Assembly (NCBI GenBank): GCA_904063045.1
Contig: CAJFCJ010000012.1
Coordinates: forward strand, 1,302,001-1,366,000
From: Dimorphilus gyrociliatus
Lineage: Eukaryota > Animalia > Annelida
DNA: 64,000 nt
Direction of reading: 5' to 3'
The position numbers and the translations under genes are program-made. Below are positions 30,301 through 59,604 of this stretch, one piece after another; the first letter of the stretch is position 1; every line of letters starts with the position of its first letter. Under the pieces are notes generated by a model. That model was not told the origin of the DNA. It saw only the letters and a list, made by a program, of their open reading frames with translations, and made no database searches.

Positions 30301-31727
30301 GCGCAGTTAATATGGCTGAAACCGCAGGCTATAAAGTTGTTGGGGGAGAATTCCTAATTAGCGTCCATTTGAATGCATCCATCTGTTTTCAAAAGAGTAA
30401 TTGGGTAATATTAAGAAGCCACTTAAGCGTAAGTCATTAGTGTTTTAGTTTCAAATTTATCATTTTCTATCTTTCTTCCTTATTTAGAGCTACTTCCTCA
30501 ACCTGGCAAAGAAAGTGTTAATGAGAACTAAAAATCCACCAAAAAATCTTGAATGGTTCACGACCCCAGCAGGCTCTGAATTCTTTTACAGTGGTGAATG
30601 GAACTGTCAACATCACAATACTTTATACGCCTTATCCGAAAGAAATTGCACTAATCCTTTGTCCTATGTTACGCAATCATTCCGAGAGCACTTGGTCGAA
30701 AAATTATTAATAAATCTAATGAGTGGACAACCTCTAGACGAACTCGACACTTTGATCGCAAGTGCCAAAGATGCCGGATTGAAAGAATGCTTTTTGTTGA
30801 AGAACTCTGATGGTGGAGACTTTGTTTCTCTTTGGTGGGGAAGCTTCTTCAAAGTTATTTCAAGTTGGAAACAAGGAAAGAAAGCAAATGAAGAAGACAT
30901 TTCGATTGTTGAAGAACTACCATATCCGTTGTTAACTACACCTGTTCGCGCTTTACATTACATTTTTGAAGCAAATCGCATACTACATACGCCATCAGGT
31001 AGTTGGTTCAAGGTTCTCTCGAAATGCGAAAGTGCAAGTCGTCTGCTATCGTGTGATCATGGAAATCAAGTTAGCAAGTTTAATTTGTTACAACAATCAT
31101 TTTAAATCGATAAGTTCATATCGCATTGTGAGTGTGCATTGTAGTTGCATTGCATTGTTTGAAATTATAGGTGCAATGTTCCTGCAATGCGATGCCCAAG
31201 ATGCGTTTTTATTCACAATTATTATCGAATTTACGTAAATTCTGGTGCAATTGTACCAGTTACATTCAATTGTTAAATTTAAATTATCCTCTATTTATAT
31301 GATCTTTATTATTCAGATTGTTACAACGGTGGCATATGATTGGTTGATAAGCACTAAGCTTATGGCCATTGAAATAGAATTGGGTGACTCCGAATCAGTT
31401 CATCCAGAGGATATATTTTCTTTGGAAAAAAATATTTATTCATTGCGCAATCACAATAAAATCACCAAATTTGTATCCAAAAAAATTAATGTATACGAGT
31501 GCGCACTGAGAATTTTGTCGAGGGTTAATCCATCAGTCACTCAAAAAATGTTAAAGCAGTTGAATCGCTATGATTTACCAGCTGGAGAGTACGCACAGTT
31601 GATGATACTTGCTGCTAAGGGAATCCAAAGGGAAGCTCAATGGCCATTCGTTGAAAAAGTACGTTCGGCATTGGACAAGAACGGAAGGGAGAATACCATA
31701 AATATGTTGATTTCTGACTATAATTAA
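27364..31727 (+). CDS. SREBF: Sterol regulatory element-binding protein
   Basis: First exon MADPLNGW...PEID| spliced to ELVSFL. b[30 protein letters not shown]|[12 protein letters not shown] carries the diagnostic Tyr. DSSR, TM1 with FNP (S2P), lumenal KTLK (fits the S1P consensus), TM2 and the C-terminal regulatory domain follow. Confidence 0.96.
31130..31195 (+). ncRNA. mir-33: pre-miR-33 in the last SREBP intron
   Basis: GTGCATTGTAGTTGCATTGCA at 31134-31154 is the mature miR-33-5p sequence; complementary arm TGCAATGTTCCTGCAATGCG at 31172-31191; lies in intron about 31069-31297. Confidence 0.95.
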
Positions 31728-52545: not shown

Positions 52546-54666
52546 TTAAGAACCTGTGGGCGTATGATTACAGAATACAAACAAATCAAAAAATTGTACT
52601 CTCATAAAGAGAGAATTTTTTTGAAAATTATAATGAAACATACCCTAAACTACTTTCTGCTAAAATCAGTGAAATTTCAGATTGAACGATTTTTAGGTTA
52701 GTAGATTGAAAAGAAAAACGAATTATGTTGATTGATTTACTATTTTGTCGTCTGCTCTTAAAAGTGGAGAAAGGACAGCAGTGAATATTTATGTCGTTTA
52801 GTACATCAGATGGCGTTGGAAATAAATCTTTAGATTTTTTTTGGCTCAAATCGATAAATCCTTTCATAATTAATCACTTATACCATTTATTCATAGTATA
52901 CTTGAATTAATGTATTACTCTATAGAACACTACGCGATAGTGAGTTTCAAACCAATAAATTATTTAAACGAAATTGTACGTTTCTAACAAAAAAAAGGGA
53001 AAAAAAAGATGCAGCATCTCCCATAATTTATGCGTCTGGTAAAATTCGTAACTATAGATATTTGTAGACCATAAAAAAATTGCCTGGTTTTAGATGCATC
53101 CAGCTGTTTGTGGTTATAAACATTGGGTCTATATTTATCATTAATAAATACAAATATATTGCCTATCAATACTTTTCACCAGGGTAAGCTTTGTTTACTG
53201 CCCGGTCGCCGCCCCCGAAACAGTGAACTTCCCATGACCCGTGCTGCCTTTGAACTGTTTATGCCGTTTCGCGAGAGGAAAAAAGAACTGGCAAGCTTTT
53301 TCTGCTTTTACAGTAAATTTTATATGAGATTGGAAAGAAGGGATTTGGAGAAAGATAAGAAAGGGAAGAGATATGTCCTTTATTCCAAGATAATTTTTTA
53401 TCTTGTATTCCCATAGAACAATGTAGAAATTTGATTTCTTATTCTTCTATTACAATTAAATATGGACAAGTAAAAAAGAACTTACACTTGAAGGTGAATG
53501 AGAAATTCATTCTTTCTAAATGTAGGCCAAACTAGGAAATTTTTTTGTAGGCTAGCATAGCAGAATCCCTTATTTCTTTCGTCTGATATATGGCATACAT
53601 GAATTTATTGGGTTACATATTAAAATATTATGTTCTACATAATAAGAACAATTTTACGCTTGATAAGATTCATAGATAAGATAGGAAGAGGATTTGCCAT
53701 TGAAAAAACTGCGTTAGAACAAAAGAAAACCATATCTATAGACTAATTTCTATATACTTATAACGTACATAAAGTCGTGTGTGTGTATGTATGTACGTGT
53801 ATGTTAGTGAGCAAACGTACGTATGTGGTTAGTGTGTACACACAGACACATACACACACTGTCTTGTATAACTTGTTAGATGCGGGGCAATGCGGGATAA
53901 GGACCATTCCCTTATATGCTTAACTCTATAGATAGTATTACTAAGTTGTCCTATATATACAACACACAAATACAACACACATACACACACATTCATCTAC
54001 AAACGCTCATACACATGACTTAATTAGATACAGTGAAATGAAATATATATATTCTAATCGATAAACGCGTAATATGTGCAGGAGAAAGGGATCGATTTTC
54101 CAGACAGATGCTAACGTTTTCAAATTCCATGTATACATCCTCTTTTCTTAGTTTTTAGTTAGAGATTTTATTGATTTTACAGCAATTTTATTCTTCTTTT
54201 AATACGGTAACGCCTGGAACGACCGTAATCTTTTTTTATTTATTCAGGCCTCTTTTCTTGAAGTGCTTTGCCTTTCGGCCTTCATTTTACCTCTTTTGCA
54301 GCTATAGCAAAAGCTGCAGCATTTTTTCTTCGCGTCTGCAATTAATAATGCAGCAGACTGCGGTATAAAACGAACTGTCCGCGTTCTTGGACAGCCAACA
54401 GTTCGCCCGGCGTCTGCCCTTTCCCTGCGTTCTAAAAGGCGGCTAATGTATGCAAGCCTCGCCTTTCTTTACCGGCGTTCAGTGCTGTTCAAAGTATAGC
54501 CAAACGGAAAATAACGATTTCGGCAGAGTATTCAATAATTTGGCCCATTTATGATGCCTGGACGATCGATTGTGAAAATACAGGTCGATCAGGGCCATAA
54601 AAGCTATGAACGAGTGTATGTAACAGAACTATGGCACGGTGACCGGGCATGGCACCCAAACATTTA

Positions 54667-54678
54667 TGCGCATGCGCA
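54667..54678. promoter_or_regulatory. NRF1-type palindrome TGCGCATGCGCA
   Basis: Exact 12-bp consensus in a GC-rich intergenic island between divergent MTMR9 and ZC2HC1A. Confidence 0.5.
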
Positions 54679-55610
54679 ATTCAAAACTATTCACAGACGC
54701 CACTCCGCATAATGTTGTCATGACTACTTCTTCGCGCATTTCACGTTTTAGACCGGCAGTCGACGCTTCTCGCTCGCCTCCCGGAAGACAAATCCTCCCG
54801 TCAGCAACTTTTCTACCAGGTTTTGACCGCCTACGGCCAGATCGATCAGCTTTCGCCTGTGTACCGAGTCCACTTTGTAAAGATGGTGAATGGTGTATTT
54901 TTAGAGGTTAGCATATTAAAACGTCCTTTGAGCGATCTTTTTGTAGAATTCGGGTGCTTTGCCACTATTTATTCGGTTTTACTAACTATATATGTGTAAT
55001 TGGAATACGCCCAATCAATATGATGCCTAGATGTAATTTTAGAGCGCGCGAATAAATTATTGGCATTGCAGTAAATCAATAAGAATACGCCAGTATACAT
55101 TAGCCTACCAACGACAGGTGGCGCGGAATGCAGGGCGGGTTGGAGGGTATCGCATTCCGAAAGCAGCACTACAATTGGATTGATCGTAAGCGACCTAAAG
55201 TTTTTTTTTAGCTTTTTCTTCATTTTTATTCTTATATTACAATAAATAAATTACCTTGACTTTCAAAGTCAAGTATATTAAGGATAAATAGGCCTGTTTA
55301 CTTTAGGTGACATTTTTCTCTATAGGAGAGATCTTTCAACAGATCGCTCAACAGACAGCCGGCAGACACGGTCTGTCTGGAACGCTTGGTATAGTAGCGT
55401 GTGTAGAAGGAAATCGAATAGTACGGAATAATTTAACGTTGATTTCTACGTCTAGACTCGTTTTCGTGGATTTGGTAACATTATTCAATTCCGCTTGATC
55501 TAATTTGAATTACGTAATTAAACATTAGCATTTTTACGCGTACGATAACCTTGTTCTCTTTCAGAAGCCTTCCACTTATCATTTGGAACAAGAATATCAG
55601 CCGTATAGGC

Positions 55611-55684
55611 GTGGAACGAATCAAGTGAGGTCAGTGATGTCTTGAGAAAATATCGAGGATATTCTGACTTCACTGAACCGTTAC
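55611..55684 (+). ncRNA. Candidate miRNA hairpin 1 (unassigned family)
   Basis: 5' arm TCAAGTGAGGTCAGTGATGTCTTGA pairs with TCGAGGATATTCTGACTTCACTGA; basal AACG/CGTT stem. Manual folding only. Confidence 0.5.
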
Positions 55685-55802
55685 CCGCCCTCTAATCCGG
55701 CTCACGCGAACGGAAGTGGTCTTTTTTCAACTCCCGCTCAACTTAGAGCAATTGCGTCATCAGGCCGGTGGGAAGGACAGAATTAATTATAATAAATTTA
55801 TA

Positions 55803-55882
55803 GAGCTTGGAGTATCAAGTGAGGTCAGTGCTGTTGAGAAATTCAGACAACGGCTTTGCTCTCTACTTGAAACTTCCAGTTC
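55803..55882 (+). ncRNA. Candidate miRNA hairpin 2 (paralog of hairpin 1)
   Basis: Shares the 17-nt 5' arm ATCAAGTGAGGTCAGTG; pairs with CAACGGCTTTGCTCTCTACTTGA; basal stem GAGCTTGGAG/CTTCCAGTTC of about 10 bp. Confidence 0.55.
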
Positions 55883-56579
55883 TTTCTTGCACTTAAACGC
55901 CTTCATGACAATGATAAGGCTATTAGTCATTATGTCCTCAATTAATCATCATATGAACAATGCCGGTTCATCATGTTCTGTCGTTCTCTTTATATATTTA
56001 TTTATATTTATCAGTCTTTACTAAATAAACGTTTTGAACGAGTTGAATCCTGTTTAAACGCCTCGGTATTAATCTCTAAAACCGTTTCCGCCTAATCGAA
56101 GAGGTGTGTTTGAACAAGTTCGAACGAACACGTTGCGGCTACTATGTGGCTACATATTTCTCGGTTTAAGTCTACATACGCTTAGATTGACCTTGAAACG
56201 CTTACTATTTCTCGATTTATCGTTTCCATCTGCCCAAGTTAACCTACTTTTATAAAGAGTGGGTTTTCTACTGACTTCGTAACCTAATTTTAATTGCCAA
56301 GCGGTATTAATAATATATACCATGAACAAACTCGCGTGCTTACTGGGTTAAAAAGTGGGGCGCATAATTTATTATAACTCTCTGTGAACTGCCGTGGAAC
56401 TGTGGCGCTCTAACGCCATCTGGATTTTGGAAATAATTAATTGCAATATTTTTACCCAAGAATGCCTTGTCAAATACTATTATTAGGTAACTGATTTGTA
56501 ATGACAGTTAAAACCCATAAAATAAATCTTTATTCGAGAAAATTAACTGCGGGTTGCTATTGAGAACGGAAATACAAAG

Positions 56580-58756
56580 ATGGACGACGACGGTATGAAA
56601 TTCCTTTGTTTTTTTATTCTATATTTCTGTATATTCAAATTAATCTTGCGATTTATTTTCAAAATATTCAAATGTTATGTAATATAAATCATCTCTCGTA
56701 ATCTCTTTAAAATTCCCTTTGTAACTGACCCTGTACGTAAAATGTTTACAGAATCCCCTGCCGAATTGGAATTAATACCATGTGACGTTTGTAGCAGAAA
56801 ATTTAATCCTGAAGTTCTAGTACGTAAATAAACTTATATTTTAGATCGTTTCTTCAGATTTCTTATTAAATAGTCCAGACACAAACCAATATGCGAGAAA
56901 AATGCAGCTAAGAAGCGTAAAGTGTTTGATTCTTCAAAACAAAGATCCGATGTTCTGGGACCATCAGCTCCTCCAGCAAGGAAACCAGAGAAAGAGAAGC
57001 CTGTAAGATATCATACAGCTCAATGAATTCCAAAACGGTATTCCTTATATTTTCCAGACACCAAAGAAAACTAATTGGCGACAAAAACATGAAAGCTTTC
57101 TCCAGTCTCTTAAGGCTGCAAGAGATGTTTCAGCCGCATTGAGCAGAGGTGAAAAAGTGCCACCACCTCCACCACCTGTTATCGATCCTGGTATAGTAAA
57201 CATTAACAATTATAGTCTGTGTACTTGATGTACTTGCTAATTTTACAGATTATGTTCAATGCGAATTCTGTCAGAGGAGGTTCAATGTACATGCAGCCGA
57301 ACGACATATTCCTTTTTGTAAAGAACAATCAATAAGGCAAAAGATAAAGAGCGCCGATGACAAGAAAGCAGCTTTGAATACACGAACAAAGGTGAAAACT
57401 AAATCTCATTAAAATTTTTTTATTAGGCCTTTCAAAGCTTAAGCAATTATTTTTTTCCCTAATAGTATCAACCCCCAAAACTAGGCAGTAAAAAAAGAGT
57501 GACATCTAATTCAAGAATTCCATCCGGACCAAGAACCGAAAATAATAATCCCAGCAATATGAAACGAACAACAGTTTTAGGCAATTCACCCACCGTTAAT
57601 CGTTATGCTAATGGGCAAACTTATGATGAAGACGTAAGGGTTTGATTAATTATATTGTAATTATAAACAGCTTAATAAAAACGTCACAGTTGTACTCTGA
57701 TAATCGACCAACCTCTGGGGACAGTAGGAGCTCATCTGGTCGACCTTTGAGAACTGGCAGAAATCCCGAAACTTATTCAAATGGGTAAGTAGTTCGAAAG
57801 ACTAAGTATATACATATTTTTTCTTTTCCTCGAACAACAAAACTAATTTCAGCATCGCTATTAGCCGTCAGCAAAAGAATGTGGGTTATTCAAAACCTAC
57901 TTCCCGCGGTCGTGGTCTAGCCAGCCCGTAAGTATTTTGGTGGTGAGCACCTGTCGAATGCCTTGCGATTTTATTCAGTGCGAAAAATTAGCTAAAAAGT
58001 TGATTTCCTTTCTGTTTTTTTTATACTTTTTTAAAATTTAGATCAATGAGAACGTCACTACTTCCCGTTCTCTCTTCGTGAGTCTTTTTATTTGAAGCAT
58101 GTTGCGGTGCGCTTATCTTTCAATCGCCAATTCTGGTTTTGCTCGTTTTAAAGATAGACCAATTTTTCACACCTCTCCTGCTGTCGTTTTATGTCTTGGC
58201 AGCGTTAGCTTTTCAAAGATATAACTTACAAAAAGTCTTTGTTGAAAGTGCTAGTTCCTTTTTAGACACACTTTAGTCTAAATTTTGAGTGAATTATAGT
58301 AATTCATCATGGATTTCTATGCACAACAAGAAATTTACGTTGTTTTCCATAAAGTGATTTCTTTTGTGTATTATCATTAAATTGTTATTTGACATTTAAT
58401 TTATGAAATCAGTGAGAAAAAAATGATCAGGAAGTTGTAAGTCTTAGCTTCAAGGAAGATTTTTGTTTGCTTTTTTTATAACCTATTTTATAGTTTGAAT
58501 AATCAAATACATGTAATTCCTTTTCTTTTTAGGTCAGGACGATCGAGGCCACCCGTAGGAAGGTACAACTATTTACTCTGTCTAATTTGTTCGTCTGTTA
58601 TTTACATCTTGACATGTTTTCAGCGGTTCACAGCATCAATCGAGTTCTGCAGGACCACCCGCTAAATTCTGCCATGATTGTGGAACAAAGTATGCAACGA
58701 CAACGGCCAAGTTTTGTGTTGAATGCGGAATCAGAAGAGTTTCCATTCCTACATAG
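56580..58756 (+). CDS. ZC2HC1A: Zinc finger C2HC domain-containing protein 1A (FAM164A)
   Basis: PCDVCSRKF...RHKPIC, NWRQKHESFL, PPPPPP, YVQCEFCQRRFNVHAAERHIPFC, and C-terminal KFCHDCGTKY...KFCVECG; several small exons in the middle may be alternative. Confidence 0.92.
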
Positions 58757-58970
58757 ACACTTAGATTGTTCATAAAAACTATTTACAATATATTGTAAAT
58801 ACTATAACTGTTATTAATATGCAAAGGGATACTCTGTACTCAAAACATCCTCGACAACATATCACTGAAAATTTTTAACGTTTTATTTTTTGTAAGCGTC
58901 AACTTGAAAAAATACACGATATCGTTGACTTTTAATTACAGGTCAAATCATTTAAATTTTTATAATTTGT

Positions 58971-59294
58971 CTATTCATCTTTTTTTTCATAGAAATGGGC
59001 GAATTCTTTCGGGTCTTTCCTTCCTAATCTTGTATGTTCTTTTTCACCCCAATCGTAAATCAAGTAGGCGGCAACAAATGCTGTATTATGTTTTAACAGT
59101 TATCGCATAAAATAAAGATTGATATGTTTATATATCTTACGGGGAACAACCCGAAATACTTGGGAGTACGTTCGTTTGAAGAAGTTTGGAATACCCTTGC
59201 TCAAAATTCCGCCAAAAGTCTTCTGTTCGAAGGGTGATATCGTGTACATTACAATTCCTCTCACTTTTACAAGCTCTCCAAAGCCCTTACCCAT
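58971..59294 (-). CDS. UQCRQ: Cytochrome b-c1 complex subunit 8
   Basis: MGKGFGELVKVRGIVMYTISPFEQK...QVFRVVP|PFVAAYLIYDWGEKEHTRLGRKDP; exons 59294-59141 and 59080-58971. Confidence 0.95.
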
Positions 59295-59604
59295 CTGCAA
59301 GGATACGAATTAAAAAATCTTAACGAAAGTTTCACGGTCATTTGGGTTATTCTACTATTTAACTCACAAACAAACATTTTTAGAAAAAATTACTCTATCT
59401 ATAGACTACAAATATTTCGCTTTTATTTGTCTTAAATTTTAATTGACAATCAAAGTTTATTTAACTATATATATACCTTGATCTTCTGTGTCCTATTCCA
59501 GAAAGAAGCAAATATAAACCAAGGATGGTAACTTGTAAGGTTCCCAACTATTGCTTTTTTTCTCTCTCTCTTTGAATAATATAGCTAAGGTATACAGTAA
59601 TAAA

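Follow-up and report, generated by a model that had tools for sequence, protein, structure and literature searches.

Two tandem pri-miRNA-like hairpins sharing a 5' arm form a predicted pair of paralogous miRNA genes in Dimorphilus gyrociliatus

Results

Two hairpins lie in an unannotated interval flanked by MTMR9-like and zf-C2HC genes

The window analysed here is a 64-kb stretch of the Dimorphilus gyrociliatus genome. Over the 15 kb that were compared it is 100% identical to contig CAJFCJ010000012.1 of GCA_904063045.1, and the offset puts the window at about 1,302,001-1,366,000 of that contig. The NCBI annotation places an MTMR9-like gene on its minus strand (52545-50441) and a zf-C2HC gene, encoding a 328-aa zf-C2HC_2 protein, on its plus strand (56580-58756). 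A UQCRQ exon, 100% identical to DgyrCDS8842, follows on the minus strand at 59100-59300. NCBI annotates no gene between the MTMR9-like and zf-C2HC genes, and it is in this interval that the two hairpins described below are found, 0.7 kb upstream of the zf-C2HC gene and on the same strand. The open reading frames that run over the hairpins have no Pfam match. One of these, a 102-aa frame overlapping hairpin 2, returned no record in an exact sequence look-up and is disrupted by a 4-nt indel in a related worm. With no Pfam match, a frame-breaking indel and no annotated gene, there is no coding signal at the hairpins.

The MTMR9-like gene itself has a myotubularin catalytic loop that reads HGSDGTDS and not the Cys-X5-Arg motif. 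Judged by this loop, the protein would be catalytically dead, which is the usual state of MTMR9.

A 17-nucleotide repeat marks the 5' arms of the hairpins

Within the whole 64-kb window the sequence ATCAAGTGAGGTCAGTG occurs as two exact plus-strand copies, at 55620-55636 and 55814-55830, with a spacing of 194 bp. No further match with two or fewer mismatches was found in the window and none appeared in 100 shuffles; chance predicts no such exact repetition. The initial annotation of this DNA had placed the 17-mer at these two sites, and exactly two copies are indeed present. It had also described the 5' arm as the only part that the two hairpins share. The shared arm stands, the exclusivity does not, as other stretches are alike in both copies: UGU at positions 18-20 of the predicted 5p product, UAUAG at the basal junction, and the similar ends of the 3' arms (...ACUUGAA in hairpin 1 and ...AC-UGAA in hairpin 2).

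Both hairpins have the dimensions of miRNA precursors

Hairpin 1 (55608-55689, plus strand) is a pri-miRNA-like stem-loop composed of a 10-bp basal stem, an upper stem and a 16-nt loop. Hairpin 2 (55802-55883, plus strand) has the same organization, with an 11-bp basal stem and a 13-nt loop. According to the MFE pair tables the upper stem measures approximately 22 nt in each hairpin, and the predicted precursor is 58 nt long in each. The U of the shared UCAAGUG comes immediately after the basal stem in both. From the fold, the 5p product of hairpin 1 is predicted to be UCAAGUGAGGUCAGUGAUGUCU (55621-55642, plus strand), starting 10-11 bp above the basal junction, and that of hairpin 2 to be UCAAGUGAGGUCAGUGCUGUUG (55815-55836, plus strand). 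Both would have the seed CAAGUGA, and in each hairpin 20 of the 22 predicted 5p nucleotides are paired. The pair tables put the predicted 3p (star) products at 55659-55678 in hairpin 1, drawn with a 2-nt 3' overhang, and at 55850-55872 in hairpin 2, both on the plus strand. Drosha/DGCR8 cleaves approximately 11 bp above the basal junction. Both hairpins display the geometry of a Drosha substrate, namely a basal stem of about 11 bp, an upper stem of about 22 nt and a loop of at least 8 nt, and in both the complementarity between the arms extends over at least 16 nt, the extent set by the MirGeneDB / Ambros criterion.

RNA folding, a check already proposed alongside the initial annotation, showed both hairpins to be far more stable than shuffled sequences on the plus strand. 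Segment 55600-55700 folds as one stem-loop at -39.7 kcal/mol (z -5.55), and segment 55795-55885, likewise one stem-loop, at -34.7 kcal/mol (z -4.44). The minus strands are weaker, at -32.7 kcal/mol for hairpin 1 and -25.0 kcal/mol for hairpin 2 (z about -3.1). Because the reverse strands fold clearly worse, the plus strand is the likely RNA strand. We also scanned the 64 kb on both strands with a sliding segment of 90 nt (25,564 segments, mean -11.9 kcal/mol). Among single hairpins, hairpin 1 ranks first in stability, a mir-33 hairpin second and hairpin 2 third.

Basal UG and a CNNC 16-18 nt downstream are accessory pri-miRNA motifs known from vertebrates, where they are helpful and not obligatory. 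Neither hairpin has UG at -14 or CNNC at +16 to +18; CNNC is seen at +7, +8, +11 and +20 in hairpin 1 and at +1 and +26 in hairpin 2. The lack of these motifs at their canonical places is one of the points that speak for conserved structured elements of a lncRNA, or of the 5' leader of the zf-C2HC gene, that would act in protein binding or RNA stability and would not be processed. The presence of a same-strand gene 0.7 kb downstream and the long conserved non-coding domain around the hairpins point the same way. We nevertheless consider such unprocessed elements quite improbable, given that the hairpins have the dimensions of Drosha and Dicer substrates and that constraint bears on the sequence of one arm and just on the pairing of the other, which is not expected of a protein-binding helix.

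One arm is held in sequence and the other in pairing

This constraint emerged when each 5p position was tabulated by script with its pairing partner in both paralogs and in both worms. Since the covariance-model alignment contains antisense rows, it was left out of the formal pair counts and the script tabulation was used. Positions 1-16 of the predicted 5p product are invariant across both paralogs and both species. In this comparison the G at positions 9, 10, 14 and 16 is partnered by either C or U. At positions 17, 21 and 22 both sides of the pair are changed between the paralogs (A:U to C:G, C:G to U:A and U:G to G:C, respectively). The basal stem, the loop and the 3' arm are the parts that have diverged. 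Most positions of the basal stems differ yet pairing is kept, with five pairs changed on both sides. Altogether the paralogs differ by roughly eight compensatory changes that affect both members of a pair, besides several switches between G:C and G:U. The combination of an arm fixed in sequence with an opposite arm that merely keeps its pairing is the signature of a guide and its passenger.

These data also bear on the architecture that had been read from the DNA at the outset. The plus-strand folds place each copy of the 17-mer in the 5' arm of a long imperfect stem, and the pair tabulation agrees with the statement that the 3' arms differ yet each pairs with its own 5' arm. The basal stems ascribed to both hairpins are likewise present, with 10 pairs in hairpin 1 and 11 in hairpin 2.

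The hairpins and their spacing are conserved in a related worm

Conservation was assessed between D. gyrociliatus and one close relative, represented by Logan contig SRR23372228_145081 (40,966 nt; L004/L008/L011), which is collinear with the window over approximately 27-62 kb. The relative was found by means of an MTMR9 exon (90% protein identity) in runs SRR23372216, SRR23372228, SRR23372229 and SRR23372232. Its contig also lends itself to phylogenetic footprinting across the window.

Across 52550-59100 the intergenic identity between the two worms is 78%. The relative carries both 17-mers at the syntenic site (L004), again with a spacing of 194 bp, and because both copies are present in both worms the duplication is older than their split. 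Hairpin 1 is unchanged and lies inside an 88-nt run of identity (55597-55684); the z-score of its ortholog is -6.28. Hairpin 2 shows six changes in 87 nt. The loop has four of them and a bulge has another; the sixth preserves pairing, being a U-to-C change in the 3p product opposite G10 of the 5p product that converts G:U to G:C. Unpaired positions take five of the six changes (binomial P = 0.009), and the predicted 5p product of hairpin 2 is identical in the relative. The ortholog of hairpin 2 (L004 6028-6114, minus strand) folds at -39.5 kcal/mol with a z-score of -6.81. Between the two worms the arms are more conserved than the loop, the pattern named in the MirGeneDB / Ambros criterion.

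The two hairpins are contained in a conserved non-coding domain of approximately 2.2 kb (about 54.0-56.2 kb) with about 92% identity to the relative, and as conservation is domain-wide, part of the sequence conservation of the hairpins could have another cause. The domain includes other perfect runs of 94, 86, 79, 67 and 65 nt, which means that sequence identity by itself does not set the hairpins apart. The other conserved blocks that were tested do not fold (z +1.4 to -0.6, with 54335-54440, a hairpin candidate that we rejected, at -1.9 and -2.9), so it is only at the two hairpins that structure and conservation coincide.

Conservation without folding in the neighboring blocks is enhancer-like, and the 17-mer contains both TCAAGTG and AGGTCA. 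The repeat might accordingly be read as double-stranded regulatory DNA, an NK2-type TCAAGTG and a nuclear-receptor AGGTCA half-site within a conserved enhancer, in which pairing is incidental. Such an enhancer would leave unexplained the z-scores of -4.4 to -6.8, the strand asymmetry, the compensatory changes and the clustering of interspecies changes at unpaired positions, and we regard it as very improbable. The initial annotation had itself argued that repeated transcription factor sites would not account for the pairing; they cannot explain its conservation and are not needed.

Conserved flanks suggest candidate borders of a primary transcript

Some 55 nt before hairpin 1 lies a 67-nt block (55486-55552) that is identical in the relative. 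The palindromes TTACGTAA and ACGCGT and TAATTA motifs are found in it, and it is unfolded (z +1.4 and 0.0). This block may be a candidate promoter or enhancer of the primary transcript of the hairpins. On the other side, 141 nt downstream of hairpin 2, a plus-strand AATAAA (56024-56029) is a candidate poly(A) signal of that transcript and lies inside a 50-nt run identical in the relative (56015-56064). The hairpins may be part of the zf-C2HC leader or of a transcript of their own that would end at this conserved AATAAA.

Farther upstream, the segment 54300-54800, and also 54031-54116 and 53050-53300, are non-coding and 95-100% identical to the relative, compared to the 78% background. A 94-nt perfect run spans 54372-54465, and the palindrome GCGCATGCGC is located at approximately 54668-54677. 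No significant fold, Rfam match or Pfam match was obtained for 54300-54800 and its companion blocks. They are possibly a cluster of promoters or enhancers, or exons of a non-coding host transcript.

The candidates behave like a bona fide mir-33 in the same window

A search of the window with Rfam 15 returned mir-33 as the only family passing the gathering threshold, which provided a positive control. This mir-33 (RF00667, 51 bits; 31129-31198, plus strand) is situated in a short intron between large SREBP-like open reading frames and is present in the relative at L011 3390-3459 (54.5 bits). Between the worms its 5p arm is identical, its loop has approximately six changes, its 3p arm has one change, and its intron flanks are about 60% identical. 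The z-scores of the mir-33 fold are -4.8 and -6.9 in the two worms. The candidate hairpins behave in the same way, with conserved arms, a variable loop and z-scores in the same range. They resemble mir-33 in size, stability and interspecies pattern, including the single 3p change in hairpin 2. Unlike the candidates, mir-33 belongs to a bilaterian family with an Rfam model and resides in an intron with fast-diverging flanks, whereas the candidates match no model and form an intergenic tandem pair within a conserved domain.

Family membership and copy number

Over 55400-56100, Rfam 15 at E-values up to 10 returned noise only, and the same holds for the related locus. Literature searches of main text with 16-, 13-, 10- and 8-mers turned up no animal miRNA in which UCAAGUGA(G) is printed. 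We know of no bilaterian, protostome or lophotrochozoan miRNA family with UCAAGUGA(G). miR-26 begins UUCAAGUA, and its six-letter overlap with the candidates is regarded as chance.

Dimorphilus is a genome-only entry in MirGeneDB 3.0 and no small-RNA reads exist for the species, so that only conserved, anciently inherited families can be listed there (PMC11701709). In the same release the Dimorphilus annotation relies on homology (MirMachine and orthologs), and many families are listed at the annelid level. This leaves room for the hairpins to be real miRNA genes of a family already held in MirGeneDB or miRBase for annelids or lophotrochozoans, in which case their novelty would be nil. The failure to match Rfam 15 even at E-values up to 10, and to find a printed animal miRNA with UCAAGUGA(G), argue against a known family, and we judge it rather unlikely.

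A covariance model of hairpin 2 picks up hairpin 1 in each of the worms (E about 3e-4 and 2e-5) and no third family member in 131 kb of the two species. Hairpin-forming repeats commonly give rise to false miRNA calls, and relics of inverted-repeat (MITE-like) transposons that fold by accident were therefore weighed as a source of the pair. In the 131 kb there are just two adjacent copies, orthologous in position, imperfect, short-stemmed and clearly constrained, and no terminal repeats were seen at them. Many dispersed copies would be expected of a MITE, and we regard a transposon origin as very unlikely.

Beyond the two species, the motif is absent from the UQCRQ relatives (L002 and L003), which are distant and on short contigs. 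The lone metagenome match to the 5p pattern (contig L001) has a z-score of +2.2 and looks coding, and was rejected as chance. Other hairpin candidates in the window were also discarded: 55410-55505, with a weak mir-723 match (z -1.1); 55675-55775 on the minus strand (z -1.5); and the GT/AC-rich, low-complexity segment 53755-53875, which folds like its shuffles (z about 0) and gives weak, spurious mir-466 and mir-297 matches. Seed matches within the window number five against approximately seven expected, which is chance level, in a count that has no power.

Discussion

Structure and comparison together predict that the two hairpins are real tandem paralogous miRNA genes, and we consider this probable. 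A reading as paralogous pri-miRNAs had been put forward in the initial annotation, and it gains support from the structure, the strand asymmetry, a stability rank like that of mir-33, the pattern of retention and substitution in the relative, and the compensatory changes. For the accompanying claim of a new family the supporting evidence is that the sequence appears neither in Rfam 15 nor in paper text that can be searched. The more specific proposal is that the pair represents an uncatalogued family of the dinophilid lineage, with seed CAAGUGA, that had duplicated by the time the two worms diverged, has kept nucleotides 1-16 unchanged, and lies inside a 2-kb ultraconserved non-coding domain; we hold this to be an even call.

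If the hairpins are miRNA genes, both would most likely derive from one plus-strand primary transcript. Drosha/DGCR8 would cut approximately 11 bp above each basal junction to release the 58-nt precursors, from which Dicer would take off the 13-16 nt loop. The 5' arm, UCAAGUGAGGUCAGUG(A/C)UGU.., with seed CAAGUGA, would then enter Argonaute as the guide, leaving the divergent 3' arms as passengers. Because nucleotides 1-16 are identical, both paralogs should repress the same set of mRNAs.

The arrangement resembles known tandem paralog clusters, such as the annelid Mir-10-P1 duplicates and the novel Platynereis clusters (PMC12257675), whose members are on the same strand a few hundred base pairs apart. 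As in those clusters, tandem duplication is combined with a shared seed and with divergence of the 3' part of the guide, the loop and the star arm. The Mir-10-P1 and Platynereis clusters are supported by small-RNA reads, whereas the Dimorphilus pair is predicted from structure and comparison, and the candidate guide sequence is unrelated to Mir-10. As a lineage-restricted annelid family, the pair would be comparable to Mir-1995 and MIR-2692, which are restricted at the level of the phylum, and to MIR-1987 of Pleistoannelida; these three are compared by description only, and the conservation of the candidate extends over D. gyrociliatus and one close relative.

The locus offers a concrete site for validation of what is otherwise an ordinary kind of gene. 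The genome of Dimorphilus gyrociliatus is among the smallest in annelids. If the prediction is true, D. gyrociliatus has a lineage-specific miRNA pair, which would mean that this miniaturised animal also gained regulators. The pair would then count among a small number of regulatory gains specific to the lineage, in an animal noted more for the reduction of its genome.
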